Positions 19,647-63,187 of a DNA stretch of 64,000 nt are shown in pieces (positions within the stretch are counted from its first letter, which is position 1; each line of letters starts with the position of its first letter). The notes beneath the pieces were generated by a model. It made no database searches and had not been told where the DNA came from. It worked only from the letters and a program-made list of their open reading frames with translations. The translations under genes were made by a program, and so were the position numbers. Source of the DNA: Rebecca billardiae RCC1528 (Eukaryota; Protista; Haptophyta); contig OZ251224.1 in NCBI GenBank assembly GCA_965240325.2, positions 1,550,001 through 1,614,000 of the forward strand, in the 5' to 3' direction.

Positions 19647-20108
19647 CTATGTTCCCTTCTTCTTCTGGGTGCTAATGTACAAGACTGCCCCCGCATCGCG
19701 CCCGTCCACGGCGGCGCAGCGCGCGAAAAGGTCAGCAGTGCAGTGATGGCGACGTGCCACATGCGGAGAGGGCGCGCACCATTGTTCCCACGAATGAACG
19801 CGTCCCCGTACTTTGCCTTGAGCTGGCCGTTCACATACTCCTCGGTCTGCTCCATGGCAATGTTCATGTAGCCATCGAGGCATGCGAGGACGCCTGTGCA
19901 GCGATGCCAATCGCACATGAGTGTTCGGACGATGATCCAGCGCGCCAAGGCGCCGCGCCCGCGTGCGCGCAGGTGAGGGATGCCGCGCGCGCAGCCCATG
20001 ACGCGCACCTCGGTAGTCGACACCCGAGTTGAGCTTCACGACGACAGGTCGTCCAATCACGGACTTGAGGAAGTCCGAGGGGTTGGACTTGCCCTCGGTA
20101 GACGCCAT
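19647..20108 (-). CDS. LSM6: Sm-like protein LSm6 (exons 20108-20009, 19893-19780, 19684-19647)
   Basis: Spliced product PSDFLKSVIGRPVVVKLNSGVDYRG/VLACLDGYMNIAMEQTEEYVNGQLKAKYGDAFIRGNN/VLYIST, with two GT-AG introns. Confidence 0.95.
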   Translation of the reverse strand: MASTEGKSNPSDFLKSVIGRPVVVKLNSGVDYRGARHGLRARHPSPARTRARRLGALDHRPNTHVRLASLHRRPRMPRWLHEHCHGADRGVCERPAQGKVRGRVHSWEQWCAPSPHVARRHHCTADLFARCAAVDGRDAGAVLYISTQKKKGT

Positions 20109-20186
20109 GGCCGCTGGCTCGCGCAGGCACCGTGGACCCGACGGAACTCCGCTGCCGCTGGAGTCCCGCCCGAAGACGCGGCATCA

Positions 20187-21524
20187 ATGGCGTGGGGCAA
20201 GTCCGGCAGCAACGAGCGGCCAGCATGGCTGGGGTCGCTGCAACGCGACGACGCCACGCTCGTGGAGCTCGCGGTGCTTCGACCTCTCGACCGCTCGATG
20301 TGGCTCGAGCTGTGCGCGGCGCTGGGCAAGTCGACGCAGCTCAAGCGGCTCAGCGCGCACAAGAGTTTGGATGAGGAGGTGCTGGGCAAGATGGCCGACG
20401 CCGTGGCGAGCTCGCGCCTCGAGAAGGTGAGCGTGGGCACGAGCGCGCTCGGGGACGCGGGTGTGGCGCTCCTCCTCCCTGGCCTGGCCGCCTGTGCCAC
20501 CCTGACCGCGTGTGACCTCGAGCGCCGAGGCCTGACGGCTGCAGGCGCGCGCGCTGTGGCCGAGCAGCTCGTCGCACGATCGCCATCGCTGCGCTCGCTG
20601 GCTGTCGGGCGCAATGAGTTTGGCTCCGAGGGCGTGCAGGTGCTCGCCCATGCAGTGGCCGCGTCGCGCCTCACGGAGCTGGACATCTCGCACACCAGCG
20701 GCATCGAGCCGGCCAGTGCGGCCGCGCTCGCGCGCGCGTGCCATCCGCCGAGCGCGCTGTCTGCGCTGGTCATGCGCGGTGCGCCACTCGGCGCGGAGGG
20801 GGCGACGGCTTTTGCGAGCGCGCTCTTGTCGGCGTCGGCGAGCTGCACGCTAGCCTCCGTCGTCCTCGCCGACGCGAGCCTCGGCTCGGACGACTCAGCC
20901 GCGGCGCTCCTCACCGCGCTCGCCGGCGCGTGTGCGCACCTCGCGACGGTCGACGTGGAGAGCGCGAACATCGGCCCGGGGGCGTGTGATGCGGTGGGCG
21001 CGCTGGCGGCGCGGCAGCCGCTGCGCGTGCTCAGGCTTGGGCGGAACGCGCTCGGTGACGACGGCATCGGCCGCCTGGCACGCGCGCTCGACGGCCGCGC
21101 GGCCGCGCTGGAGGAGCTCCACCTCGGCTGTGTCGGCCTGGAGGGCGCGGATGCACTCGGCGCTCTGCTGCGTGCGCTGCGCCCGTGCGCCGCGCTGCGG
21201 ACGCTCGAGCTGATGGGGAACCCGCTCGGCGACGCGGGGGTGCGAGCACTCGTTGAGGAGGCCGCCGCCGCGCACGCCGGTGGCCTCGGCGCCGTCGACG
21301 CACTCGGGCTCGCGGGCTGCGCCATCGGCATTGAGGGCGCGCGCACAATTGCTGGCGCGCTGTGCGCGCGCGGCGTGCTGCCGCGCCTGGCCGCGCTGGA
21401 GTGCGCGAAGAATCCGGCGTGCGAGCATGCAGATTGGGAGGCTAGCGTCGTGCGCCCCCTCAGCGAGGCGCGGCCAACGACGATTGTCGTCTGGCGCGCG
21501 CATGGCTCTGAGGCTGCGCCCTAG
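20187..21524 (+). CDS. Leucine-rich repeat protein (RI-like)
   Basis: Repeated LxxLxLxxNxLGDxG motifs, e.g. LRVLRLGRNALGDDG and LRTLELMGNPLGDAG. Confidence 0.85.
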   Translation: MAWGKSGSNERPAWLGSLQRDDATLVELAVLRPLDRSMWLELCAALGKSTQLKRLSAHKSLDEEVLGKMADAVASSRLEKVSVGTSALGDAGVALLLPGLAACATLTACDLERRGLTAAGARAVAEQLVARSPSLRSLAVGRNEFGSEGVQVLAHAVAASRLTELDISHTSGIEPASAAALARACHPPSALSALVMRGAPLGAEGATAFASALLSASASCTLASVVLADASLGSDDSAAALLTALAGACAHLATVDVESANIGPGACDAVGALAARQPLRVLRLGRNALGDDGIGRLARALDGRAAALEELHLGCVGLEGADALGALLRALRPCAALRTLELMGNPLGDAGVRALVEEAAAAHAGGLGAVDALGLAGCAIGIEGARTIAGALCARGVLPRLAALECAKNPACEHADWEASVVRPLSEARPTTIVVWRAHGSEAAP

Positions 21525-45485: not shown

Positions 45486-45603
<118 letters not shown>

Positions 45604-46333
45604 CAAGGGCCGTGCACGGTGCAGCCTGTCGCCCGGATTGAGTTTTGAGAATGAGATTCGCCGCTGAGTGACTCAGACTACTGGCAACTGGGTCGACCGT
45701 GCTGATGACGACGTTTGCGCCTTTGCCGAAACTTTAACTTTGCCCGAATTGCCGGTTTGGATTGTGTATATTATTTGTGCACATCATTCTGAATGATGTA
45801 ATATATATATACATATATATATTACATCATCGGCGCGGCTAATTAGTAAACTATAATAGATGAGCCGATGACTTCAATATTCAATAAGCTAGATACCGCC
45901 TATACTGCCTAGGATCGAGCTTGGCCAGTCACACTGACACGCTGATCTTTTGAGCCGCTCGTAACGCAATACTACTTCGCTCATCGTTGTTGCGTCGTCA
46001 GCTCGCCGTAGCCGTCATGATCAGCCGATGGCGATGCCCGATCTGCATCTGTTATCCGTCGTTGAATGGATCAGCCTCGCCACCGAAAAAAAGCAGGGAA
46101 AAAGCTCGCGCTGGAAAATCATGACGATCACGATGATGCATTTTCTTTTGATGGCGGCTTTTTGCCACGGCGTGCGCTGCCACTACTGAAGAGCTTTCAT
46201 TTTGAGCCTCGCGTCGTCCGCCGCACGCCTGGGCTACGACGGAGTCCTCCGGCGGCGGAGTGGGGTCGCTGCGCTCCACCGAGAGCGGCCGTCTAAAGTG
46301 CGAGCTTCTGGCGCGTCTTGGAGCGAGGGCATC

Positions 46334-49300
46334 ATGTCCGGCCGCTCGCCATCGGGCACGCCGCCGCCGACTGCTTCGAGCTCCCCGTTCCAGTTCGGTT
46401 CGGCACAGCCTGCATCGGCCGGCGCTGAAGGTGGCGATGCCGCCCGGGGCGCGCCCGGGCCTCGCGTCAAGAAGGTTGACGTGCAGTTCTCGGGCGCGGA
46501 CTCGATCGGCGACGTGGTCAAGGCGGTGCGCGGCCCGCCCGCGGCGACCGCTCTCGAGCTGTACGGCGCCGCGATGGATCAGGAGGAGAGCGACACGCTG
46601 TGTGACGGCGCGGGCATCGCCCTTGCCGAGGCCATCACAGCCGCGCGCGGCTCGCTGGGCGAGGTGACGCTGCGGCAGCAACGTATCTGCGCCTCCGAGG
46701 TCAAGGCCCTGATGGGGTCCTTGTCCGAGCAGAGCGCGCTGCGCCAGCTCGACCTGACGGAGAGCAGCATTGGCGACGAGGCCGGCGAGGTGCTGGCATC
46801 GGCGCTGGGCTCGTGCGCGGCGCTGCGCGTCGTGCGGCTCGGCGACTGCTCGCTCGAATCGAGCGTGGAGCTCGTGGTCAATGCGCTACGCATGGCTGGG
46901 TCGCTGGAGGAGCTCGATCTGTCGTACAACGAGCTGGACGCGTCGGTGGTGAGCGTGCTGTGCGACTGCGCGTCTGCATGGCCGTCACTCCGCTTGCTCA
47001 ACCTCGAGGGCACCGAGCTCGAGGAGGAGGACGTCGAGCCGTTGCGCGAGGCTTTGCGCGAGACGGGCACTGCGTCGGCGCTGCGGCTGGAGGAGGAGTC
47101 CGAGGATTCGGAGGACGAGGACGAGGACGGCTCCGACGCCGAGAAGGCGCAGGATGAGGCAAAGCAAGCCGTCAGCGCTGGCGGTCCAGGCGCGCAGGGC
47201 AACGCCAGCCAGCGCACAGCGACTGGGGCGGGAGGCGCTTCAGCCGCTGCTGGGGCTGGCGGCAAGGCCGGAGCCGTCCCATCGGCGTCCGGAGAGGGCG
47301 CTTCGACCAAAGCTGCCGCAAGCGCAGGTGCGAGCGGCTGGGCGGGCACTGCTCTCGCCACGGCGGCGAGCGGCAGCGGTGGCGGCAGCGGCGGCGATAC
47401 CTGGGAGTGCCCGACGTGCTCCGTGGCGAATCAACGCTCTGCTGTCGCGTGCATCGCGTGTGGCTGGGTGGACGAGACGCGTGCGCCATCCAAGAGTGAC
47501 CTCGCGGCCAAGTTCGCAAGCTCCTCCGCGTCCGGTGCCGGCGGCGGGACTGGCTTCGCGTTCGGAGGAGCTGCGTCGGCCTCTGCCTCGGGCCCAAGCA
47601 CGGGCTTCTCCTTCGGCGGCGCGGCGAGTGGCTCCGCTGGGGCGTCGGAGACCAAGGGCGGTGGCTTCTCCTTCGGCGGCGCGGCGAGTGGCTCCGGTGG
47701 CGCGTCGGAGACCAAGGGCGGTGGCTTCTCCTTTGGCGGCGCAGCGGCTGGCTCGAGCAGCGCGCCCGAGGCCAAGGGCGCGCAGAGCGCAGGATTCTCC
47801 TTCGGCGGCGCGGCTGTCGGTGCCACTGCCGCGTCGGACAGCAAGGGGGCACAGAGCTCGGGCTTCTCCTTCGGCGGCGCCGCAGCCGCGAGTCAGCCCG
47901 GTCAGAGCACTACGGCTGGCTTCTCGTTTGGCAAGCCTCAGCCGGCTGCAGCGGGAAGCGGCGGGGCGAGCACCAGCCAGGCGGGCGGCTTCGCCTTTGG
48001 CAGCTCGGCTCCGTGTCCCACGCGGCCCTGCGAGCAGGCGGACAGTACCGCACCGACCGCCGCGGCGGGGGCTGGTGGGACCCCTGGATTCGCGTTTGGC
48101 GGCGGCAGCAGCCCTGCGAGCGGCGGGGCGGTTGCCACGGCAGCCGGCGGCTTCCATTTCGGCGCGAGCCCCTCGGCTGGCGGACCAAGTGGCGGCGGTG
48201 GCACCGGCGGAACGCCGGCGACAGCCACTGGCGCTGCATTTGCCTTCGGGTCCGCTGCTACTGCTGCTGCGGACGGCGACCCAGCCCCGAGCGCGGCCAC
48301 GCCGAGCACGGCGGCAGCTGGAGTGCGCGTCAAGAAGGTTGACGTGCAGTTCTCGGGCGCGGACTCGATCGGCGACGTGGTCAAGGCGGTGCGTGGCCCG
48401 CCCGTGGCGACCGCTCTCGAGCTGTACGGCGCCGCGATGGACCAGGAGGAGAGCGACACGCTGTGTGACGGCGCGGGCATCGCCCTTGCCGAGGCCATCA
48501 CAGCCGCGCGCGGCTCGCTGGGCGAGGTGACGCTGCGGCAGCAACGTATCTGCGCCTCCGAGGTCAAGGCCCTGATGGGGTCCTTGTCCGAGCAGAGCGC
48601 GCTGCGCCAGCTCGACCTGACGGAGAGCAGCATTGGCGACGAGGCCGGCGAGGTGCTGGCATCGGCGCTGGGCTCGTGCGCGGCGCTGCGCGTCGTGCGG
48701 CTCGGCGACTGCTCGCTCGAATCATGCGCTGAGGTCTTGGTCGAGGCCCTGCGCATGGCTGGGTCGCTGGAGGAGCTCGATCTGTCGTACAACGAGCTGG
48801 ACGCGTCGGTGGTGAGCGTGCTGTGCGACTGCGCGTCTGCATGGCCGTCACTCCGCTTGCTCAACCTCGAGGGCACCGAGCTCGAGGAGGAGGACGTCGA
48901 GCCGTTGCGCGAGGCTTTGCGCGAGACGGGCACGGCGTCGGCGCTGCGGCTGGAGGAGGAGTCCGAGGATTCGGAGGACGAGGACGACGACGATTCGGAG
49001 CCCGGCAGCGGCGACGATGCGGCCGCCGAGGATGAGGCCGACGCGGCAGCTGCGTCGCACTCGGACGATCGGAAAGGCGCCGCCGCCGATGACAGCGCGG
49101 GTGACTCCGAGGAGACGGACGAGGACGACGGCCAGTTCAGCGCAGCCTCCGCCCAGTCAGCGGCCTCGGGCTCCGAGCACGTCCGCCAGCGCATGCCGGC
49201 TGCGCCGCCGGCTCGCGCCGTGCCTCCCGCGCCAGCAGCGTCGGCCTCGCCCTTCTCCGCGCCGGCACGCCCAGACGGGAGTGCGACCAAGCCCACGTTC

Positions 49301-52300
49301 GCCTTTGGCTCAGCAGCGCAGGCGCTTTCGCCTGCAGCTGGCGGCCCGACCGCGTTCGCCTCCCCGCCGGCCGGGAGTCAGCTCACCTTCGGCATGCTGG
49401 CTGCTGCCGCGAGCAAGAGCCCTCCTGTCGCCTTCGGCGGCGTGGGCATCGCGCCAACCTTCAGCGCGTCGCCCGGGCCGGCGGGCAGTCCGGCCCTTGG
49501 CACTCCGAGCTCGGTGCCGCACCAGACGTCCACCATCCACTCGCCTGCCGCCCCTGCGCCCACCTCGGCCAAAGCCAGCCCTGCCTCGAGTCGCGCGGCG
49601 GTACGGACGGGTCCGGTGGTGAAGGGCAAGGCCGAGGAGGACCTGCTCAACGCGGCCGAGCTGGGCGACCACGATGCTCTGGTGCAGGCGCTGGGCGCGG
49701 GCGCGGACGTGCGCTGCGTGGACGACAAGTCTTACACGGCGCTGCACTGGGCGGCGAAGGAGGGCCGGCTGGACGACGTGCACTCGCTAGTGGGCGCCGG
49801 GGCGCCGCTCGACGCGCAGAACAAGATCGGCGCGACGGCGGTGATCCTGGCGGCGTCGAGCGGTTGGGACGACTGCGTGGGCGCGCTGCTCGAGGCGGGC
49901 GCGAGCCTGGGCGTGCTGACGAACAAGGGCAAGTCCGCGCTGCAGGTGGCGCGTGAGAAGAAGGACAAGGTGGACGACGCGGACGAGGTGAAGCGGCTGG
50001 AGGCGTGCATCAAGCTGCTCGGCGCAGCTGAGGGCGGCACCATGCCAGCCGGCGTCGCACCGGGCAGCGCGACGCCGACAGCCGTTGCGGCCGCCACGGG
50101 CAGCACTCCGGCTGGGAGCGGCGCCGAGGCCAAGCCGGCCGTATCCGCCGCTGGCTCTGGCTTGGCGCAGTTCAACTTCTCGTTCGGCGGCGGTGGCGCG
50201 ACGCCATCGAGCGGCGCGAAGCCGAGCTTCGGTTTTGCGCCGGGCAGCGGCGGCACGCCTTCGTTCCCCAAGCCGAGCGCGCCGCTGTTTGGCGGCGGCA
50301 GCGGCGCCTTTGGCAGCGGCGGCGCGACGCCCGGCGGCTTTGGGGTCTCGCCGGTGGCTTCCGCTGGTGGCAGTCCGTTTGGGCTGGGCTCGGCGTCGAA
50401 GCCGCTGACGTTCGGGGCCGTGGCGGCCACAGCCGGAGCTGGCGGCTTCGGGGCCCCAGCTGCATCGGCGGGCGCGTGCGGCTTCGGTCTGGCGCCATCG
50501 GCTCCGGCCACATCGGCTGCGCCGAGCCCGTTCAGCTTCAGCTTTGGCGGCGGCAGCGGCATCGGCAGCGGCTCGGCGGGCGCGTTCGGCGGCACGCCCA
50601 AGTCTGCGGCGCCGTGCGTGGTGGCCGCGAGCACGCCGCCGTCGACGGCAGACGCGAGCAGCGGTGCGACGATCTCGAGCAGCGCTCCCACGGTCACGTG
50701 CGCGCCATCCATGTTCCCGAAGCCGACGGTGCCGCCCGCCTCGAGCGCAGCCGTGTCGGCAGCGCCGCCGAGCGTGCCAACCGTCGCCCCGCTGCGCGCG
50801 GCGGTACGGACGGGTCCGGTGGTGAAGGGCAAGGCCGAGGAGGACCTGCTCAACGCGGCCGAGCTGGGCGACCACGATGCTCTGGTGCAGGCGCTGGGCG
50901 CGGGCGCGGACGTGCGCTGCGTGGACGACAAGTCTTACACGGCGCTGCACTGGGCGGCGAAGGAGGGCCGGCTGGACGACGTGCACTCGCTAGTGGGCGC
51001 CGGGGCGCCGCTCGACGCGCAGAACAAGATCGGCGCGACGGCGGTGATCCTGGCGGCGTCGAGCGGTTGGGACGACTGCGTGGGCGCGCTGCTCGAGGCG
51101 GGCGCGAGCCTGGGCGTGCTGACGAACAAGGGCAAGTCCGCGCTGCAGGTGGCGCGTGAGAAGAAGGACAAGGTGGACGACGCGGACGAGGTGAAGCGGC
51201 TGGAGGCGTGCATCAAGCTGCTCGGCGCAGCTGAGGGCGGCACCATGCCAGCCGGCGTCGCACCGGGCAGCGCGACGCCGACAGCCGTTGCGGCCGCCAC
51301 GGGCAGCACTCCGGCTGCGAGCGGCGCCGAGGCCAAGCCGGCCGTATCCGCCGCTGGCTCTGGCTTGGCGCAGTTCAACTTCTCGTTCGGCGGCGGTGGC
51401 GAGACGCCATCGAGCGGCGCGAAGCCGAGCTTCAGCTTTGCGCCGGGCAGCGGCGGCACGCCTTCGTTCCCCAAGCCGAGCGCGCCGCTGTTTGGCGGCG
51501 GCAGCGGCGCCTTTGGCAGCGGCGGCGCGACGCCCGGCGGCTTTGGCGGCTCGCCGGCAGGGGCGGGCGGCAGTCCGTTTGGGCTGGGCTCGGCGTCGAA
51601 GCCGCTGACGTTCGGGGCCGTGGCGGCCACAGCCGGAGCTGGCGGCTTCGGGGCCGCACCTGCATCGGCGGGCGCGTGCGGCTTCGGTCTGGCGCCATCG
51701 GCTCCGGCCACATCGGCTGCGCCGAGCCCGTTCAGCTTCAGCTTTGGCGGCGGCAGCGGCATCGGCAGCGGCTCGGCGGGCGCGTTCGGCGGCACGCCCA
51801 AGTCTGCGGCGCCGTGCGTGGTGGCCGCGAGCACGCCGCCGTCGACGGCAGGCGCGAGCAGCGGTGCGACGATCTCGAGCAGCGCTCCCACGGTCACGTG
51901 CGCGCCATCCATGTTCCCGAAGCCGACGGTGCCGCCCGCCTCGAGCGCAGCCGTGTCGGCAGCGCCGCCGAGCGTGCCAACCGTCGCCCCGCTGCGCGCG
52001 GCGGTACGGACGGGTCCGGTGGTGAAGGGCAAGGCCGAGGAGGACCTGCTCAACGCGGCCGAGCTGGGCGACCACGATGCTCTGGTGCAGGCGCTGGGCG
52101 CGGGCGCGGACGTGCGCTGCGTGGACGACAAGTCTTACACGGCGCTGCACTGGGCGGCGAAGGAGGGCCGGCTGGACGACGTGCGCTCGCTGGTGGGCGC
52201 CGGGGCGCCGCTCGACGCGCAGAACAAGATCGGCGCGACGGCGGTGATCCTGGCGGCGTCGAGCGGTTGGGACGACTGCGTGGGCGCGCTGCTCGAGGCG

Positions 52301-55300
52301 GGCGCGAGCCTGGGCGTGCTGACGAACAAGGGCAAGTCCGCGCTGCAGGTGGCGCGTGAGAAGAAGGACAAGGTGGACGACGCGGACGAGGTGAAGCGGC
52401 TGGAGGCGTGCATCAAGCTGCTCGGCGCAGCTGAGGGCGGCGCCACGCCAGCCGGCGTCGCACCGGGCAGCGCGACGCCGACAGCCGTTGCGGCCGCCAC
52501 GGGCGGCACTCCGGCTGGGAGCGGCGCCGAGGCCAAGCCGGCCGTATCCGCCGCTGGCTCTGGCTTGGCGCAGTTCAACTTCTCGTTCGGCGGCGGTGGC
52601 GCGACGCCATCGAGCGGCGCGAAGCCGAGCTTCGGTTTTGCGCCGGGCAGCGGCGGCACGCCTTCGTTCCCCAAGCCGAGCGCGCCGCTGTTTGGCGGCG
52701 GCAGCGGCGCCTTTGGCAGCGGCGGCGCGACGCCCGGCGGCTTTGGGGTCTCGCCGGTGGCTTCCGCTGGTGGCAGTCCGTTTGGGCTGGGCTCGGCGTC
52801 GAAGCCGCTGACGTTCGGGGCCGTGGCGGCCACAGCCGGAGCTGGCGGCTTCGGGGCCCCAGCTGCATCGGCGGGCGCGTGCGGCTTCGGTCTGGCGCCA
52901 TCGGCTCCGGCCACATCGGCTGCGCCGAGCCCGTTCAGCTTCAGCTTTGGCGGCGGCAGCGGCATCGGCAGCGGCTCGGCGGGCGCGTTCGGCGGCACGC
53001 CCAAGTCTGCGGCGCCGTGCGTGGTGGCCGCGAGCACGCCGCCGTCGACGGCAGGCGCGAGCAGCGGTGCGACGATCTCGAGCAGCGCTCCCACGGTCAC
53101 GTGCGCGCCATCCATGTTCCCGAAGCCGACGGTGCCGCCCGCCTCGAGCGCAGCCGTGTCGGCAGCGCCGCCGAGCGTGCCAACCGTCGCCCCGCTGCGC
53201 GCGGCGGTACGGACGGGTCCGGTGGTGAAGGGCAAGGCCGAGGAGGACCTGCTCAACGCGGCCGAGCTGGGCGACCATGATGCTCTGGTGCAGGCGCTGG
53301 GCGCGGGCGCGGACGTGCGCTGCGTGGACGACAAGTCTTACACGGCGCTGCACTGGGCGGCGAAGGAGGGCCGGCTGGACGACGTGCACTCGCTAGTGGG
53401 CGCCGGGGCGCCGCTCGACGCGCAGAACAAGATCGGCGCGACGGCGGTGATCCTGGCGGCGTCGAGCGGTTGGGACGACTGCGTGGGCGCGCTGCTCGAG
53501 GCGGGCGCGAGCCTGGGCGTGCTGACGAACAAGGGCAAGTCCGCGCTGCAGGTGGCGCGTGAGAAGAAGGACAAGGTGGACGACGCGGACGAGGTGAAGC
53601 GGCTGGAGGCGTGCATCAAGCTGCTCGGCGCAGCTGAGGGCGGCACCAAGCCAGCCGGCGTCGCACCGGGCAGCGCGACGCCGACAGCCGTTGCGGCCGC
53701 CACGGGCAGCACTCCGGCTGCGAGCGGCGCCGAGGCCAAGCCGGCCGTATCCGCCGCTGGCTCTGGCTTGGCGCAGTTCAACTTCTCGTTCGGCGGCGGT
53801 GGCGCGACGCCATCGAGCGGCGCGAAGCCGAGCTTCGGTTTTGCGCCGGGCAGCGGCGGCACGCCTTCGTTCCCCAAGCCGAGCGCGCCGCTGTTTGGCG
53901 GCGGCAGCGGCGCCTTTGGCAGCGGCGGCGCGACGCCCGGCGGCTTTGGGGTCTCGCCGGTGGCTTCCGCTGGTGGCAGTCCGTTTGGGCTGGGCTCGGC
54001 GTCGAAGCCGCTGACGTTCGGGGCCGTGGCGGCCACAGCCGGAGCTGGCGGCTTCGGGGCCCCAGCTGCATCGGCGGGCGCGTGCGGCTTCGGTCTGGCG
54101 CCATCGGCTCCGGCCACATCGGCTGCGCCGAGCCCGTTCAGCTTCAGCTTTGGCGGCGGCAGCGGCATCGGCAGCGGCTCGGCGGGCGCGTTCGGCGGCA
54201 CGCCCAAGTCTGCGGCGCCGTGCGTGGTGGCCGCGAGCACGCCGCCGTCGACGGCAGGCGCGAGCAGCGGTGCGACGATCTCGAGCAGCGCTCCCACGGT
54301 CACGTGCGCGCCATCCATGTTCCCGAAGCCGACGGTGCCGCCCGCCTCGAGCGCAGCCGTGTCGGCAGCGCCGCCGAGCGTGCCAACCGTCGCCCCGCTG
54401 CGCGCGGCGGTACGGACGGGTCCGGTGGTGAAGGGCAAGGCCGAGGAGGACCTGCTCAACGCGGCCGAGCTGGGCGACCATGATGCTCTGGTGCAGGCGC
54501 TGGGCGCGGGCGCGGACGTGCGCTGCGTGGACGACAAGTCTTACACGGCGCTGCACTGGGCGGCGAAGGAGGGCCGGCTGGACGACGTGCACTCGCTAGT
54601 GGGCGCCGGGGCGCCGCTCGACGCGCAGAACAAGATCGGCGCGACGGCGGTGATCCTGGCGGCGTCGAGCGGTTGGGACGACTGCGTGGGCGCGCTGCTC
54701 GAGGCGGGCGCGAGCCTGGGCGTGCTGACGAACAAGGGCAAGTCCGCGCTGCAGGTGGCGCGTGAGAAGAAGGACAAGGTGGACGACGCGGACGAGGTGA
54801 AGCGGCTGGAGGCGTGCATCAAGCTGCTCGGCGCAGCTGAGGGCGGCGCCACGCCAGCCGGTGCCACGCCAGCCGGGTCGGCGCCGGGCGGCACCAAGCC
54901 GACAGCATCATCAGCTGCCCTGGGCTCGTTCGGATCCGGGCTGGGTGTCGCGACCGCGCTTCCGACGACGGCTTCCTTCGCTTTGGCCGCGGGAGGGCTC
55001 GGCCTGCCCCCGGCCGGCTCATCAGCCGCCGCGCCGCCCGCGTTCGGCGCGCAGCCCTTCGGTGCGTCTCTTTTCGGTGCCCCGTCCAAGGCGGATCCGA
55101 CGGCATCGCTTGGAGCGTCAGTCCGGATGCCCGCCGAGTCGTCGCGAGCCGCCGCTGCTGCTGCCGCAGTCACAAAGCCGGCAGCGGGCACTGTCTCCTC
55201 GTCAGCAGGCGCAGCTGGCGGCGGCCAGCGCGCGGCGCAGCTGGCCACTGCGGCGAGGCTCGCAGATGAGGCTGGCTTCCACGCAGCGCTCGCGGCGAAG

Positions 55301-56762
55301 GCGGACTCGCGCGCAGCCGACGGCTCGGGGAACACAGCGCTCCATTACGTGGCTGCGCGAGGCTCGGAGTCGATGCTTCGCTCGCTGCTCGCGCTCCCAG
55401 GCGAGGTGGACCTGATAAACAAGGTGTGCGCGCGCGTGAGCCGTGCTGCGCGCTGCGTGCGCGCGGCACAGCCTGCGCGCATGCGACAGCACGCGCCGCC
55501 CATCCGAGACGCCCTGCCGCTGAGTACTCGTCCACCGCTGCGCGCCCCCGCCTCCACGCACCCACATTACAGGATGGTGCCACGCCGCTCATCCTGGCGG
55601 CATCGAACGGCTGGCCGAGCTGCGTGCAGCTCCTGCTCAGCGCCGGCGCGGACGCGAGCGCGCGCACGGCCGAGGGCAAGTCTGCAGCGCAGCTCGCGGA
55701 CGAGCACATGGCCGCGGATGCGGAGGACAGCAGCGCGCAGGACGCGTACGGTCGCGTCCTGAGCTTGCTGCACTCGTCGGCTACCGCGGCTGGCTCGAAG
55801 CCTCCCCCGGCATCGACGGCGCCACCCGCCACTCCAGCCCCGGCGAGCTCCGCGCGGGCAGGAGCGGAGGCGCAGCAGAACTCCACCGCCGCCGCGCAGC
55901 TCGCAGCAGCCGAGCGCGCGCGCGCTCTGCTGGCGCGTCTGAGCGCAGCGGAGGCGTCCAAGGCGAAGGAGCTCGAGGCTAGCGAGGTGCGGATGCAGGC
56001 CTCGGCTGGGCCACGCCGCGCTGCACGCGCCTCCGCGCGCCCCGTGCGTGCTCTGACGCGCGAGCGTTCCCATTGCCCCTGCTCACGGCCCGCGCGCGCC
56101 CGCAGGCGCGGAGCAGGGCCCTCGAGCGGCAGCTGGACGCCGAGAAGGCTGCGGCCAAGGCAGCACAGGCCGAGGCTGCGGAGGCGCAGCGGCACGCCGC
56201 GCAGCTCGAGGCAGAGGCGAGCGTGCTGCGGCGCGAGAAGCTCCTACTCGACCAGGCGGAGGCGCTCGTCGAGACGCTGCTCGGCGACCTTCGCCGCACG
56301 GAGGACGAGCTCAGGGAGGCGGACCAACGCGCCCGCACGGCCTCGCTGCCGCCACCAGTCCACAGCGCGGACGCGGCAACCTCAACAGATGTGCCTCTGG
56401 GCACGACAGCTGCCCACGATGAGCCCGTCGATGCTGACTGTGCTGGTGCTACGCCGCAGACGCCGACGACTCCTGTGCCGCGCGACGAGACGCCGATGTC
56501 GCAGCCGCCGTCGTCGACGAGGCAACGTCAGGAGACGATGCACGCGGCACGCATTGCGCTGATGGCGTCGCCGGCCAAGCGGCCGCCCATGGATGCGCTC
56601 ACGCTGCGTGTAGCTTCAGAGCGCACACGTCCCGGCGGCGGCGCGCCGCCTGCGCAGGGTTGGTCAACCATTGGCAGCACGTCTGGGCCGCGCGACAGGT
56701 CTGATCCGCAGCTTCCACTCGGCGTCGCCCTGCTGAACGCGTCTCCAGCTGCGCGTAAGTAA
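46334..56762 (+). CDS. Giant nucleoporin-like protein: 2x(LRR+acidic tail), RanBP2-type ZnF, FG repeats, ankyrin modules, coiled coil (exons 46334-55423, 55573-55986, 56106-56762)
   Basis: Open frame of over 9 kb containing WECPTCSVANQRSAVACIACG, many FSFG/FAFG and ankyrin TALHWAA motifs. GT-AG introns at 55424-55572 and 55987-56105 restore an ankyrin repeat (NK/DGATPLILAA) and the coiled coil. Confidence 0.85.
46463..48987 (+). repeat. Intragenic duplication of ~660-bp LRR module (46463-47124; 48326-48987)
   Basis: Near-identical DNA offset by 1863 bp. Confidence 0.92.
49592..54860 (+). repeat. In-frame tandem repeat with 1200-1203-bp unit (ankyrin + FG region), 4 full plus 1 partial copy
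   Basis: Units start at 49592, 50795, 51995, 53198 and 54401. Confidence 0.95.
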
Positions 56763-57170: not shown

Positions 57171-58133
57171 TCACCGCGCGACACGGCCACCGCCTGCTGG
57201 AGGCCTCCGCTCACCCCACGGAGTGCAGCTATTGTCCACAGCTGTCATATCGTCCATCCGCAGACCACCGCGACGGAGAGCCCCCTCGATTGCCCTGTAC
57301 GCCCTGCTGCCCACCGGGGGGACGTGACCTGAGCGCGTGTACACGTTTGCTCCTCCGTAACCCTCCCATGCGGCGTTGCTCCCATGGTAGCGCACAGCAA
57401 ACCAGGGCTCCTCAGCCGAGTTGCTCACTTGGGCGCCGAGCACGAGCCACTTGTCCTCGTAGTTGAGGTAGGCTGGCTCGAGGCGCAGCAAGAGCTCATG
57501 CGGACGCGAGGGGTCGGGCTGCGTGATCCGTTTGCCCCCTTCCCGGGTGAACCATTTGTCCCCGTCCAGGTGCACGCGGTAACGGAACACGGCCGGCACT
57601 GAGCGGGTCGCGCCCACCCGCTCGCCCTTGGAGAAGGTGTGCACCTGGCAGTCAAACTTGTCAAACGCGGGGTTGAGCCCCAGGGTGAGCTTCCAAGTAC
57701 CCGAGAGCAGCTCGTCAACGGGTGGTACAGCCGGTGGCTCCAGCTGGAGGGCAGCGCGCGCGCGATCGAACTCGGCAGCATCGCTCGTGTCCCCCGCCAA
57801 GGGCGGCACGCATCGTGACTGCGTCATCGCGCATTCCGAAAAGGATCGTAGCGTAGAGTCCTCGTATAGATCCATGCAGCGCACCTGGCCGAGGGGGTCC
57901 GAGGCGGACGCGCCAGCGCACGCGATGCCACGCGCGCACGAGCCGCTCTGCATGCAGGCGGCCAGTTCAGGCTTGCACTCGCGCACGACACAGCGCATGT
58001 CAGCGGCATGCGCGACGGCCAGTTCAGGATGCGCTGGTGGATGCAAGCACAGCAGCCAGCTGGCGGCATGCGCTACGACGCTTGTCGCGAGGGACCGCGA
58101 CGCGTGCGAGCCCACGGGGCCGCCTCCGCGCAT
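57171..58133 (-). CDS. VDL: Violaxanthin de-epoxidase-like lipocalin protein
   Basis: Cys-rich N-domain; GTWKLTLGLNPAFDKFDCQVHTF, LNYEDKWLVL, YHGSNAAWEGYGGANVYTR and DNSC motifs; lacks the Glu-rich tail of true VDE. Confidence 0.85.
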   Translation of the reverse strand: MRGGGPVGSHASRSLATSVVAHAASWLLCLHPPAHPELAVAHAADMRCVVRECKPELAACMQSGSCARGIACAGASASDPLGQVRCMDLYEDSTLRSFSECAMTQSRCVPPLAGDTSDAAEFDRARAALQLEPPAVPPVDELLSGTWKLTLGLNPAFDKFDCQVHTFSKGERVGATRSVPAVFRYRVHLDGDKWFTREGGKRITQPDPSRPHELLLRLEPAYLNYEDKWLVLGAQVSNSAEEPWFAVRYHGSNAAWEGYGGANVYTRSGHVPPVGSRAYRAIEGALRRGGLRMDDMTAVDNSCTPWGERRPPAGGGRVAR

Positions 58134-59201
58134 CGTGGATTCGCGAGCCAGGGCGCGGGGCGGTCCTGGACTCCTGGTCGAGCTTCCGAGTTCCAAGCCG
58201 GACTTGTTTCCAGATGTCGATTTGCCTGGGCGATGGTGGCGGCGCCGCGCCGCCGCGCGGGCCGGCTGTCAGACGCGCGTAGGAGCCCGCGGCGCGCGCT
58301 CGGCCTGGCTCGCCGCCTGCTCGCCGCCTGCGCGCGCGGCACGCGGCCGGCGCGACCCAGGCGGCGCGCGGCGCGAGGTTCGCACGCCCGGCCGCGTGAG
58401 CGAGTCGGGCGCGTTCGGTCGGCGGCACCTTGGCGATCGTGTTCGTCACGGGCTGTAGCGAACCGGCTTCATTCGCATCGACGCCCGAGGCTGTGCGTCG
58501 CGCGCGTTCTGTGCCATTCTGCGGCAGTGCAGTGGCTGCTCTTATTGCGCACAGACGGCCGTTGGGCTTCGGGACGGGCGCTCTCGAGGGCGCTTGGCGG
58601 CGGATCCCGTGGCGGGCTGGGGCAGGCACGGCAGTCCGCCGTGTCCGCGCCCAGGTGACCTGAAGCGCAAAGTAATGTTGAGCATGGTGATGTGCTCTAT
58701 CCAACGATACCCCATGTGCGCAGTGCGCTTATCTGGCATACAAGTGTCGAAGTGATGCGAGTCGACAACTGTCGAAACACTTGTGGGGCAGTGGGCAGGT
58801 CACACACCAGTCGGCGGCACCGAGCGGATGGCCTGGACGCGTGGAAGAAGCTGCTCAGGTCCGCACATGTTGAAGGCAGCAGGGCTGTTCTGAGTGTTCA
58901 GCGGCTGATGCAGCCGGCGGTGGGTCACTACTCACTCGCCTGTAGTCACTATCTAATCCGTAGCGATTCTCACTAGCTGCGGGTACAGTAACAATGTCAA
59001 TGATTCTGACTCTGTCGACCGCGATCGCCCCGTGTCGAAGTTGTTGAGCCGACGCTGCGCACGGCGCCGCCGCTGCAACTCTGAGTCATGCTGCAAGGCG
59101 CCATCCTGCTGATGAGATTGCTCTCGCAGTGGCGTGCTTCTGCTTCGGCGCGAGCTGCTGTCAAGGGAGGGTGAGTCAGCCGGTCTGACGATCGAGTATG
59201 A

Positions 59202-61363: not shown

Positions 61364-63187
61364 TCATGCAAGGTTTGGGCCCGTCGCCATCGCAGCCGCA
61401 TCCGGCGGTGCCGCACCCGCAGCCGTGCGCGCGTTTGACGCAACGTCCGCGTCGTACGGCGCGGGTGGCTGCTCATCGCCAGACCCACCGACGCTGCCGC
61501 TCGCTGGCAGCGCAGCGAGCGACTCGTGCGGCGGGGTTGCAGCACCGAGCGGCTGGATGGTGACAGCATAGTCAGCAGCTTGCAGGCTCTCCTGCGCGCT
61601 GTCTGCAGCCACGAGGTGCGCGTCGCTTTGCCGGCCGCGCTGCCAGCCAGCCAGGCCTCCACGGCGGACACGAATCACGAGGACGAGCGCACCGACGGCC
61701 AAGAGGACGACGACGATGACCACGGCGACGACGGCGCCCGTGTGGTGCCGGTGCGAGTGCCGACGCACATCCTGCTGCGCCCACACGAAGCCGTGCCGCT
61801 TCGCCTGCTGGAAGAAGACGGCAAACGCGTCGCACTCGGTGCAGTTGTGCTTGAGCTGCGCGAAGGAGACGGTCGTTCGGAACTCCTTGTAACGCGCCAG
61901 GTAGCGCGAGTTCTGCCCGCAGTACGCGTCCGCGGTGCGAGCGGCCTCGCAGCACGCCGTCGAGCAGGCAATCGTCTCATTCGCGCCGTCGCCGCACGCC
62001 TCCTCGAACACCGCCAGCGGGCCGGAAGGCGGGCTCGTGGGCGCAAAGCACGGCATCTGGTCGCCGTGGCGGATCGCGACCAGCGGCATCTCCCCCGGCT
62101 GGCAGTGCGCCCACGGCTCGCCGACGTCGCACGGCTCGAAGCGCACGGCGGGGTCCATCGTGTAGCACCACGCGCCCGCGTGCCCGTCCGGGTTGCGGCA
62201 GTGGTTGTGCCCGCCCAGCCCGGCCCGAGGGTAGGTCGCGTGCGTGTCGCCGTGCACATGCGGCGCGCTCGACTCCCACGGTTGGCAGGCCTTGCCCGAG
62301 GCGGTCACGTTGACCGTGCCCCTGTAGTCGGAGGCGTCGGGCTCGGCGTAGCACTCGCCCGCGCCGTGGAAGCAGTCCTCGCCGTCCCAGCCGCACTCGG
62401 CCGTGTTGCACGCGCTGTCGCACTCGCCGTCGTCCACAAAGTCCTCCAGGCAGCCTGGGTTGCACCCACTGAACGTCTGGCAGTCCCCGCGGTCCCAGCC
62501 GCACGCGGCGTTGAAGCACGCGGAGTCGCAGTACCCGTCGCCTGGCCACGTGACGTGGCATCCGGGGGCGCACTTTGCGTCGTCACAGTCGCCGCCATCG
62601 TCGTAGCACCCAAGGGCCAGGCACTCCTGCACGAGCCGCGCGCAGGGGCGCGCCGACACAGGTCAAAGGCGCGCACGAGCAGAGACACGCGAGTGCGCGG
62701 CAGAGAAGGGGCGCGCGCGCACTTGTTGGCAGACACCGTCGCCGATGAGGTCACTGGAGCAGCCTGGCGCACACTGGTCGTTGGCACGAATCTCAGACTC
62801 GGCCAGCATGTACGCGCCGATCGTGTACTCAGACTCCTCAAAGCCGTAGACGGACATGTGCAACGTGCACGGCTCTGCGGTGCAGAAGAATGGCCGGCCG
62901 CGCAGGAAGACGGCTTCCTCGGTGCCGATGTCGTCCATCACCCAGCTGGCTGTCATGCTATCGGGCATGGGATACATGAACGACGCGTACACGTCCGGAT
63001 CGCCATAGGATGGGATGAGCCGGACCTTCACACCGGCCGCGTCCTCGGGCACGTTGACGGCGTAGTACTGGAAAGAGTCCTCATTGACGAAGGCGGAGCG
63101 CAAGGTGCCGGGCTCGAGCACTTGCTCCGAGCCTGTTGTGCTCGACGCGACGGCGAGGACGAGCAGGGCGAGGAGAGCGCGGGCCAT
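61364..63187 (-). CDS. Single-pass membrane protein: signal peptide, PPC-like domain, 3 LNR (Notch) repeats, kringle, TM (exons 63187-62723, 62626-61364)
   Basis: CAPGC..GDG.C...C...C..D.GDC three times; kringle DYRG..TASGKACQPW..HNHCRNPDG..AWCYT; TM AVVAVVIVVVLLAVGALVLVI; phase-0 intron at 62722-62627. Confidence 0.88.

Follow-up and report, generated by a model that had tools for sequence, protein, structure and literature searches.

RanGAP, the GTPase-activating protein (GAP) of Ran, is positioned at the nuclear pore via SUMO and Nup358 in animals and via a WPP domain in plants, and is untethered in yeasts (PMC11825100). In human RanGAP1, Arg93 bridges Glu46/Ala41 of Ran beside the gamma-phosphate, at Ran switch I, and Asp273 is a Ran contact (PMC12246119), while Arg189 and Arg191 are carried by an A-G-R-N-R-L-E-N loop (PMC13317620). 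RanGAP of this leucine-rich repeat (LRR) type was not found in Myzozoa or haptophytes; the RanGAP of Toxoplasma is TBC9, the acidic C-terminal motif of which binds the basic patch of Ran, and haptophytes carry TBC9 with the same acidic tail (bioRxiv 10.64898/2026.08.05.743068).

Here, a stretch of 64,000 nucleotides from Rebecca billardiae RCC1528 (Haptophyta; GenBank assembly GCA_965240325.2, contig OZ251224.1, positions 1,550,001 to 1,614,000 of the forward strand), henceforth called the window, was analyzed with regard to one gene at 46334-56762 (+), which combines two RanGAP-like LRR modules with a RanBP2-type zinc finger, phenylalanine-glycine (FG) repeats, ankyrin units, and a C-terminal helical stretch. 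Judged by its sequence, the product may be an FG nucleoporin-like protein specific to the lineage, in which a remnant of RanGAP has been repurposed, probably for docking, a reading that we favor with modest confidence. A literature search retrieved no described nucleoporin with this domain combination. All searches were run on single exons or domains, and exons were concatenated solely for motif counts and coordinate mapping. Coordinates refer to the window unless a contig is named.

Relationship of the LRR modules to RanGAP

After a short FG-containing head at the protein N-terminus, LRR module 1 (46466..47140, +) comprises about seven repeats of the ribonuclease inhibitor (RI) type, which are capped C-terminally and followed by an acidic tail from 47090 onward. 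LRR module 2 (48329..49003, +; RanGAP profile 95 bits) is followed by a longer acidic stretch on to about 49150, and both tails contain EEESEDSEDED. The sequence-only reading, a model's annotation made before this analysis, had described an LRR with acidic tail occurring twice, each copy being shorter than a full RanGAP, and both statements held: each module has about 210 residues, which aligned to residues 147-359 of RanGAP1.

In a sequence search of the PDB, ribonuclease inhibitor came out on top by summed score, the LRR fold being RI-type. Alignments paired the module colinearly with the RanGAP C-terminal half, beginning at the helix that precedes the 'LKVF-AGRNRLEN' strand and passing through the cap helix into the acidic tail, with 24-32% identity to five RanGAP domains. 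The G-D-C aspartate (human Asp273), the cap helix, and the acidic tail are retained, and the Asp and Cys are nearly invariant in the algal module family and in RanGAPs. Profile comparison with hhalign, akin to the HHpred check that had been proposed for RanGAP kinship, matched the algal module family (built without RanGAP rows) to the RanGAP profile with a probability of 99.7%, an E-value of 2.4e-25, and a score of 173, pairing columns 50-211 of the family with 187-347 of the 380 RanGAP profile columns; against a single RanGAP sequence, the E-value was 5.8e-20 (score 135). Two RI-like LRR proteins of the same genome, used as controls, reached E-values of 1.2e-5 and 1.2e-9 (scores 45 and 68). 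An RI-type LRR_6 protein encoded elsewhere in the window (19980-21524, +; E 7e-17) served as generic LRR control. When the genome was searched in six frames with the RanGAP profile, the two modules ranked 4th and 5th of 130 matches, and they were the only ones among these to extend to profile positions 357-358 of 361.

For structural comparison, a model generated with AlphaFold2 (AF2) from a single sequence (predicted local distance difference test (pLDDT) 57) was set aside for an alignment-based one (pLDDT 88). The best match of the latter in VIA-align was human RanGAP1 residues 147-359 (Z 22.1, root-mean-square deviation 2.3 A over 201 residues), followed by a match at Z 20.0, with axonemal LRR proteins and ribonuclease inhibitor two Z units below RanGAP1. 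Foldseek alone did not separate RanGAP from RI, NLR, or axonemal LRR proteins. A word search returned two matches, both to animal RanGAP1, and an atlas look-alike search returned generic LRR clusters only, at low scores. An ANP32-like (LRR plus acidic tail) or TONSL-like identity was considered and rejected, as the repeats are RI-type and no ANP32 chain was among the PDB matches listed. Overall, the comparisons support a homology of the module specifically to the C-terminal part of RanGAP, beyond mere membership in the RI/NLRC3-type repeats, and descent of the module from RanGAP appears likely.

Catalytic elements and interaction with Ran

In the AF2 model, the module consists of about 210 folded residues with seven strands. 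It represents the C-terminal 60% of the GAP domain (RanGAP repeats ~6-11, cap, and acidic tail) and thereby falls short of a complete GAP domain of about 11 RI-type LRRs and ~330-350 residues. According to the alignments, the invariant D-x-F-T-G-R loop with human Arg93 belongs to the missing N-terminal half and is absent from the module, as are the five RanGAP repeats that precede the module region. The A-G-R-N-R-L-E-N loop is replaced by G-A-A-M-D-Q-E-E-S-D-T, and the underlying acidic-loop pattern, G-A-x-x-D-x-x-E-x-x-T, is invariant throughout the algal family. A family-specific invariant Arg is located at module position 73, where RanGAP reads P-Q-N-G-I. Since the FTGR/Arg93 loop is lacking and an acidic loop takes the place of GRNRLEN, autonomous GAP activity is unlikely, and the module is best described as a RanGAP homolog that lacks the makings of an active GAP domain. 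Of the earlier proposal that a RanGAP-like domain is hard-wired into an FG protein, the RanGAP-specific kinship and the fusion could thus be upheld, whereas the notion of an active RanGAP could not, the FTGR loop being absent and GRNRLEN replaced.

The modules might nevertheless be active RanGAP domains built into an FG filament, with Ran-GTP being hydrolyzed on the nucleoporin itself. Such a function would fit the specific RanGAP homology including cap and acidic tail, the conserved GDC aspartate (human Asp273), and the lack of a separate canonical RanGAP among the loci found in the genome (see below). It would also have a parallel in P0003/P0005 (ENA metagenome assemblies, cluster of 62 members), Nup358-like proteins with four Ran-binding domains, a RanBP2 finger, and FG repeats, which carry an embedded complete RanGAP domain with FTGR; their architecture indicates that complete RanGAP has been fused into an FG protein elsewhere in nature. 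However, the modules match RanGAP1 over residues 147-359 only, without the five preceding repeats and the FTGR/Arg93 loop, and GRNRLEN is swapped for the conserved acidic pattern. In addition, TBC9 is the reported RanGAP of haptophytes and myzozoans (bioRxiv 10.64898/2026.08.05.743068), and a TBC gene with two fingers and an acidic tail is present in the genome. Together, these points make active domains highly improbable. A variant, in which the half-RanGAP modules would be catalytic or co-catalytic on the FG filament, either as a tandem pair or together with a TBC9-type enzyme or RanBP1, is regarded as equally improbable; if it applied, LRR-RanGAP would not have been lost in haptophyte-like algae but would have shrunk and been built into the pore.

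Co-folding of LRR module 1 with the Ran of the same genome, entered as two unjoined exon chains plus GTP, gave a score of 0.21 against a mark of 0.34, a value that speaks neither for nor against binding. The Ran gene itself (C10:3191547-3194569; positions 1206-2063 of locus L057, -) has at least three coding exons separated by GT..AG introns. No in-frame ATG was present directly upstream of its P-loop exon, and hence a further small 5' exon is likely.

Search for a separate RanGAP in the genome

Whether the genome encodes a RanGAP apart from this gene had been raised as a check in the sequence-only reading, and no canonical LRR-RanGAP was found by profile, sequence, or pattern searches. No locus for the N-terminal half of RanGAP was recovered with an animal RanGAP query, a five-sequence full-length profile, or an N-terminal profile, and no FTGR-bearing RanGAP locus was found with a back-translated FTGR...EIP pattern searched against the genome. 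Three loci considered as canonical RanGAP (C8:1353233, C3:3744428, and C21:326918) were dismissed for lack of the FTGR motif and for their other domain contexts, and an FTGR...EIP pattern match on C31 was a chance match in a stop-ridden frame. The R. billardiae lineage therefore appears to be without canonical LRR-RanGAP, in agreement with the report on haptophytes (bioRxiv 10.64898/2026.08.05.743068). No close paralog of the LRR or ankyrin module was found elsewhere in the R. billardiae genome.

Among 19 TBC loci in the genome, one (L076; C1:4856622-4856849) has both the IxxDxxR and the YxQ finger and ends with ...DESDDEIVFSDEEEDEDPEERLRKLAEAN. The respective gene (604-2049 of the locus; C1:4855725-4857170, +) has an intron and an acidic C-terminal stretch, DESDDEIVFSDEEEDED, and is considered a candidate ortholog of the TBC9-type RanGAP. 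PF00638 (RanBD1) was detected in the genome solely at C30:958916-959430, a single RanBP1 locus, and the PF00638 search found no RanBD1 domain in the gene under study. The Nsp1_C (Nup62-type) domain is encoded by a separate gene on C39. As a side observation, RCC1-repeat open reading frames (ORFs) of ~500-700 aa are massively expanded at many loci, especially on contigs C31, C25, C35, C27, and C34, with 3,340 candidates at first look and all 150 of the 150 scored ones above the Pfam cut-off.

Conserved family in other organisms

A related gene, L058 (JACLAC010006021.1), was found by a pattern scan of metagenome contigs. It consists of one ORF of more than 1,819 codons with the order LRR-acidic, FG, LRR-acidic, FG, ankyrin, FG, acidic patch, FG, ankyrin, FG, and helical tail. 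Its first ankyrin module is 59% identical to that of the R. billardiae gene (E 1e-47), and its LRR modules share 29-36% identity with their counterparts, so that the ankyrin domain is the best-conserved part of the protein. No zinc finger was present in the L058 ORF, and no sequence conservation was detected between the helical tails of the two genes. That the order of LRR, FG, ankyrin, and helical tail is kept on the contig of another organism indicates that the fusion is real and the architecture selected.

An exhaustive protein search was dominated by giant multi-LRR proteins scoring by summed repeats, and the informative matches were P0141, P0078, and P0049. P0141 is a 219-aa metagenome fragment with N-terminal FG repeats followed by an LRR module at 54% identity. 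P0049 (Amoebidium parasiticum, EukProt; 793 aa) consists of two complete RanGAP domains in tandem. The search also recovered KAL1499154.1 of Prymnesium parvum, which carries two tandem LRR modules. On CM083881.1 of the same species (L041 6001-9805), the annotated 622-aa protein stops inside a third LRR module, and cap, acidic tail, and FG-like motifs follow in the subsequent ORF, so that the gene has probably been split in the public model.

The two LRR modules of the R. billardiae gene are 96% identical in protein and 97.75% identical in DNA over 667 nt (15 nt differ). Identity between modules 1 and 2 is likewise 95% in Prymnesium and amounts to 67% in L058, whereas modules of different organisms share 29-48%. 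Identity within organisms far exceeding that between organisms points to homogenization of the pair by gene conversion or repeated duplication. Together with the near-identical ankyrin and FG units described below, the homogenization of the LRR pair in three lineages would make this FG protein a clear-cut case of internal concerted evolution.

Gene structure and integrity

The gene has three exons and 3,386 codons, with the ATG at 46334 and a TAA at 56760-56762. Exon 1 (46334..55423, +) contributes 3,030 codons uninterrupted from the ATG, within an ORF at 46202-55762 of 3,186 open codons, and ends after ...DLINK at a GTGTGC donor at 55424. Intron 1 (55424-55572, +) is of the GT..AG type with its AG acceptor at 55571-55572, and reading resumes at 55573 with DGATPLILAASNGW in exon 2 (55573..55986, +; 138 codons), which is followed by a GT donor at 55987 and a second GT..AG intron (55987-56105, +). 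Exon 3 (56106..56762, +; 218 codons plus TAA) encodes a helical stretch to ~56370 and then a tail rich in Pro, Ser, and Thr. This splicing model was based on the GT..AG sites and on comparison with the L058 ortholog. The intron 1 junction INK|DGATPL corresponds to the unspliced ANKLSITPL in L058, in which the ankyrin repeat is uninterrupted at the same place, corroborating the splice.

As units 1-4 of the ankyrin array are 98-99.7% identical and the LRR copies 97.75% identical in DNA, the giant ORF could in principle have been inflated, or be chimeric, through mis-assembly of near-identical repeats or through the gene model. This explanation is considered the least probable of all those weighed here: the units can be told apart by differences at defined positions, among them a 3-nt indel, the frame is open across 9.1 kb, and an independent contig of another organism (L058) shows the same order of domains. 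Any such doubt would be limited to the copy number and would leave the architecture unaffected. The region was thus confirmed as one intact, conserved gene with a predicted product of 3,386 residues. All elements named in the sequence-only reading were recovered at its coordinates or a few bases away.

Zinc finger, FG repeats, ankyrin units, and C-terminal region

The zinc finger of RanBP2 type (PF00641; 47402..47461, +), WECPTCSVANQRSAVACIAC, is an exact match to the W-x-C-x2-C-x3-N-x6-C-x2-C motif that the earlier annotation had recognized. It scored 24.5 bits against PF00641 on the excised piece (cut-off 27) and 28.5 bits in the six-frame genome search. At the Ran-contact motif, which is L-V-x-N in published Nup153 fingers, it reads S-V-A-N. 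Five zinc-finger loci were inspected in the genome (this one and four others), and the gene under study was the only FG-rich one among them.

FxFG region 1 (47561..48250, +) contains 11 FG dipeptides and, at 47603-47780 (+), a 60-nt tandem repeat in three copies. LRR module 2 is separated from the ankyrin array by a stretch with a short cluster of three FG (49304..49438, +). The array begins with four tandem units of 1,200/1,203 bp that are nearly identical (49595..54403, +), each encoding an ankyrin domain of ~150 aa and an uncharged FG linker of ~250 aa; in a fifth unit (54404..55078, +), the first ~444 nt encode this ankyrin domain again and the remainder a shorter, diverged FG linker with four FG. 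The units start at 49595, 50798, 51998, 53201, and 54404; units 1-4 differ pairwise by 4-25 nt in 1,200, and unit 5 resembles the others in the ankyrin part only. A sixth, diverged ankyrin domain (55250..55770, +) is split by intron 1, with Pfam Ank matches on both exon pieces. The ankyrin domain exceeds the Pfam threshold (Ank_2, 73 bits, E 2e-20) and has consensus-like ankyrin matches in the PDB, being generic by sequence. The repeated ankyrin modules with FG-rich linkers, as well as the dense FxFG repeats, were hence recovered as anticipated, in the form of five units plus the diverged sixth domain and of 62 FG dipeptides in the whole protein (concatenated exons), with FSFG occurring 14 times and GFG, PFG, and LFG as further types. 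Phe is followed by Gly in 62 of 113 cases (55%), compared with ~16 expected at 14% Gly. The linkers are rich in Ala, Gly, Ser, Pro, and Thr and almost uncharged (nine charged residues in one 253-aa linker), and the protein thus shows the many FG motifs in long low-charge linkers that are characteristic of FG nucleoporins.

The C-terminal region contains a helical stretch rich in Ala, Glu, Gln, Arg, and Leu (~55891-55986 and 56106-56370). A C-terminal coiled coil had been predicted; the helical stretch is indeed present, and it is probably a coiled coil, a label that stems from the sequence pattern; no Pfam match was obtained for the stretch.

A pore-associated FG protein is considered fairly likely. 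Alternatively, the protein could be a cytoplasmic or nuclear low-complexity scaffold away from the pore, e.g., a condensate protein, in which the LRR, ankyrin, and acidic parts would contact partners other than Ran, such as histones or further basic proteins. The Pfam search revealed no nucleoporin domain and no known Nup anchor in the gene, the ankyrin sequence is of a generic kind, any basic ligand could be accommodated by the acidic loops and tails, and the finger is not kept in L058, all of which would be compatible with such a scaffold. The density and types of FG motifs in uncharged A/G/S/P/T linkers are, however, typical of FG nucleoporins, and the same protein also contains two domains related to the Ran system as well as a helical region at its C-terminus, so that a non-pore scaffold is considered rather unlikely.

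Proposed role of the protein

According to the reading as an FG nucleoporin-like protein with a RanGAP remnant, the giant FG protein would reside at the periphery of the nuclear pore in a haptophyte alga, with its C-terminal helical region probably acting as the anchor. As their composition suggests, transport receptors would bind to the near-uncharged FG linkers, about 2,000 residues in all, between which lie strongly conserved ankyrin domains. The N-terminal part would present two modules derived from the C-terminal half of RanGAP and one Nup153/Nup358-like zinc finger, and the pseudo-GAP could dock Ran or Ran-receptor complexes via its retained rear surface and acidic tail, or alternatively bind another basic partner. 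Binding of Ran or Ran-receptor complexes without catalysis is put forward only tentatively. Considering that the lineage appears to be without canonical LRR-RanGAP and that a TBC9-type RanGAP is reported to be used in its stead by haptophytes, the LRR module may be the surviving remnant of the ancestral RanGAP.

Several points weigh against this reading. Six-frame searches may miss an intron-split RanGAP, and likewise a very divergent gene. The RanGAP profile was built from five sequences, all of animals or an opisthokont protist, and 5 of the 11 rows in the AF2 alignment were RanGAPs, which may bias the model toward RanGAP geometry. Of two Ran contacts on the rear surface of human RanGAP1, Asp273 is retained, and the equivalent of Phe302 is Tyr in this protein and Asn in L058 and Prymnesium; the Ran-facing surface is therefore not clearly conserved. 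With its borderline Pfam score and its absence from the L058 ortholog, the zinc finger does not count among the core features. The number of 1.2-kb units is taken from the assembly, and FG-rich low-complexity proteins occur outside the pore, too.

On the evidence above, this alga and at least the haptophyte Prymnesium would still possess RanGAP-derived sequence, reduced to a truncated tandem module within a protein with FG, ankyrin, and helical-tail parts. If the protein sits at the pore, it would illustrate, by a concrete example, that the remnant of an enzyme can be retained for docking following non-homologous replacement.

Neighboring features in the window

A perfect (AT)56 microsatellite is located at 45490-45601 in GC-poor intergenic sequence, with ~730 bp separating it from the downstream ATG. 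The neighboring gene at 57171-58196 (-) encodes a violaxanthin de-epoxidase (VDE)-type lipocalin (Pfam VDE, E 5e-48), with 50-56% identical relatives from transcriptome and metagenome sources. An ORF at 61364-62659 (-) joins a Kringle domain to Notch/LNR domains, an extracellular-type pairing that is unusual for an alga.

Comparison with known systems

With LRR-type RanGAP (S. pombe Rna1p, human RanGAP1), the modules have in common the RI-type LRR fold, colinear with repeats ~6-11, the motifs GSLEEV, an LDL-type strand, GDC, and L-x-EL-x-LS-x-NE, and a cap helix 'AL..xG...AL' immediately followed by the acidic tail. They differ in size (~210 residues with 7 repeats versus ~340 residues with 11 repeats), in lacking the D-x-F-T-G-R loop (Arg93/Arg74), in having an acidic loop instead of G-R-N-R-L-E-N, and in being present twice inside an FG protein. 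TBC9 resembles the modules in its acidic low-complexity tail and in its occurrence in lineages reported to be without LRR-RanGAP, but its TBC fold is unrelated to LRRs, and it is a small soluble or membrane-associated enzyme without FG character.

Among nucleoporins, Nup153 likewise has W-x-C-x2-C-x3-N-x6-C-x2-C fingers followed by FSFG-type repeats, although with four fingers instead of one and with an N-terminal pore-targeting region that the present protein lacks. Nsp1/Nup62 and Nup159/Nup214 share the general layout, in which long FG domains connect a folded module at the N-terminus with a helical segment at the C-terminus, whereas the present protein has neither Nsp1_C nor a beta-propeller, and folded ankyrin domains interrupt its FG region. 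Nup358/RanBP2 with SUMO1-RanGAP1, as well as P0003/P0005, correspond to it in being large FG proteins with RanBP2-type finger(s) and RanGAP-type LRRs on an FG filament. In contrast to these, the present protein is devoid of Ran-binding domains, SUMO E3, and the cyclophilin part, its LRR part is a half-domain, and it additionally has ankyrin modules and a helical tail at the C-terminus. Provided that it sits at the pore, the protein would add covalent fusion as a fourth solution for bringing RanGAP-type surfaces to this site.

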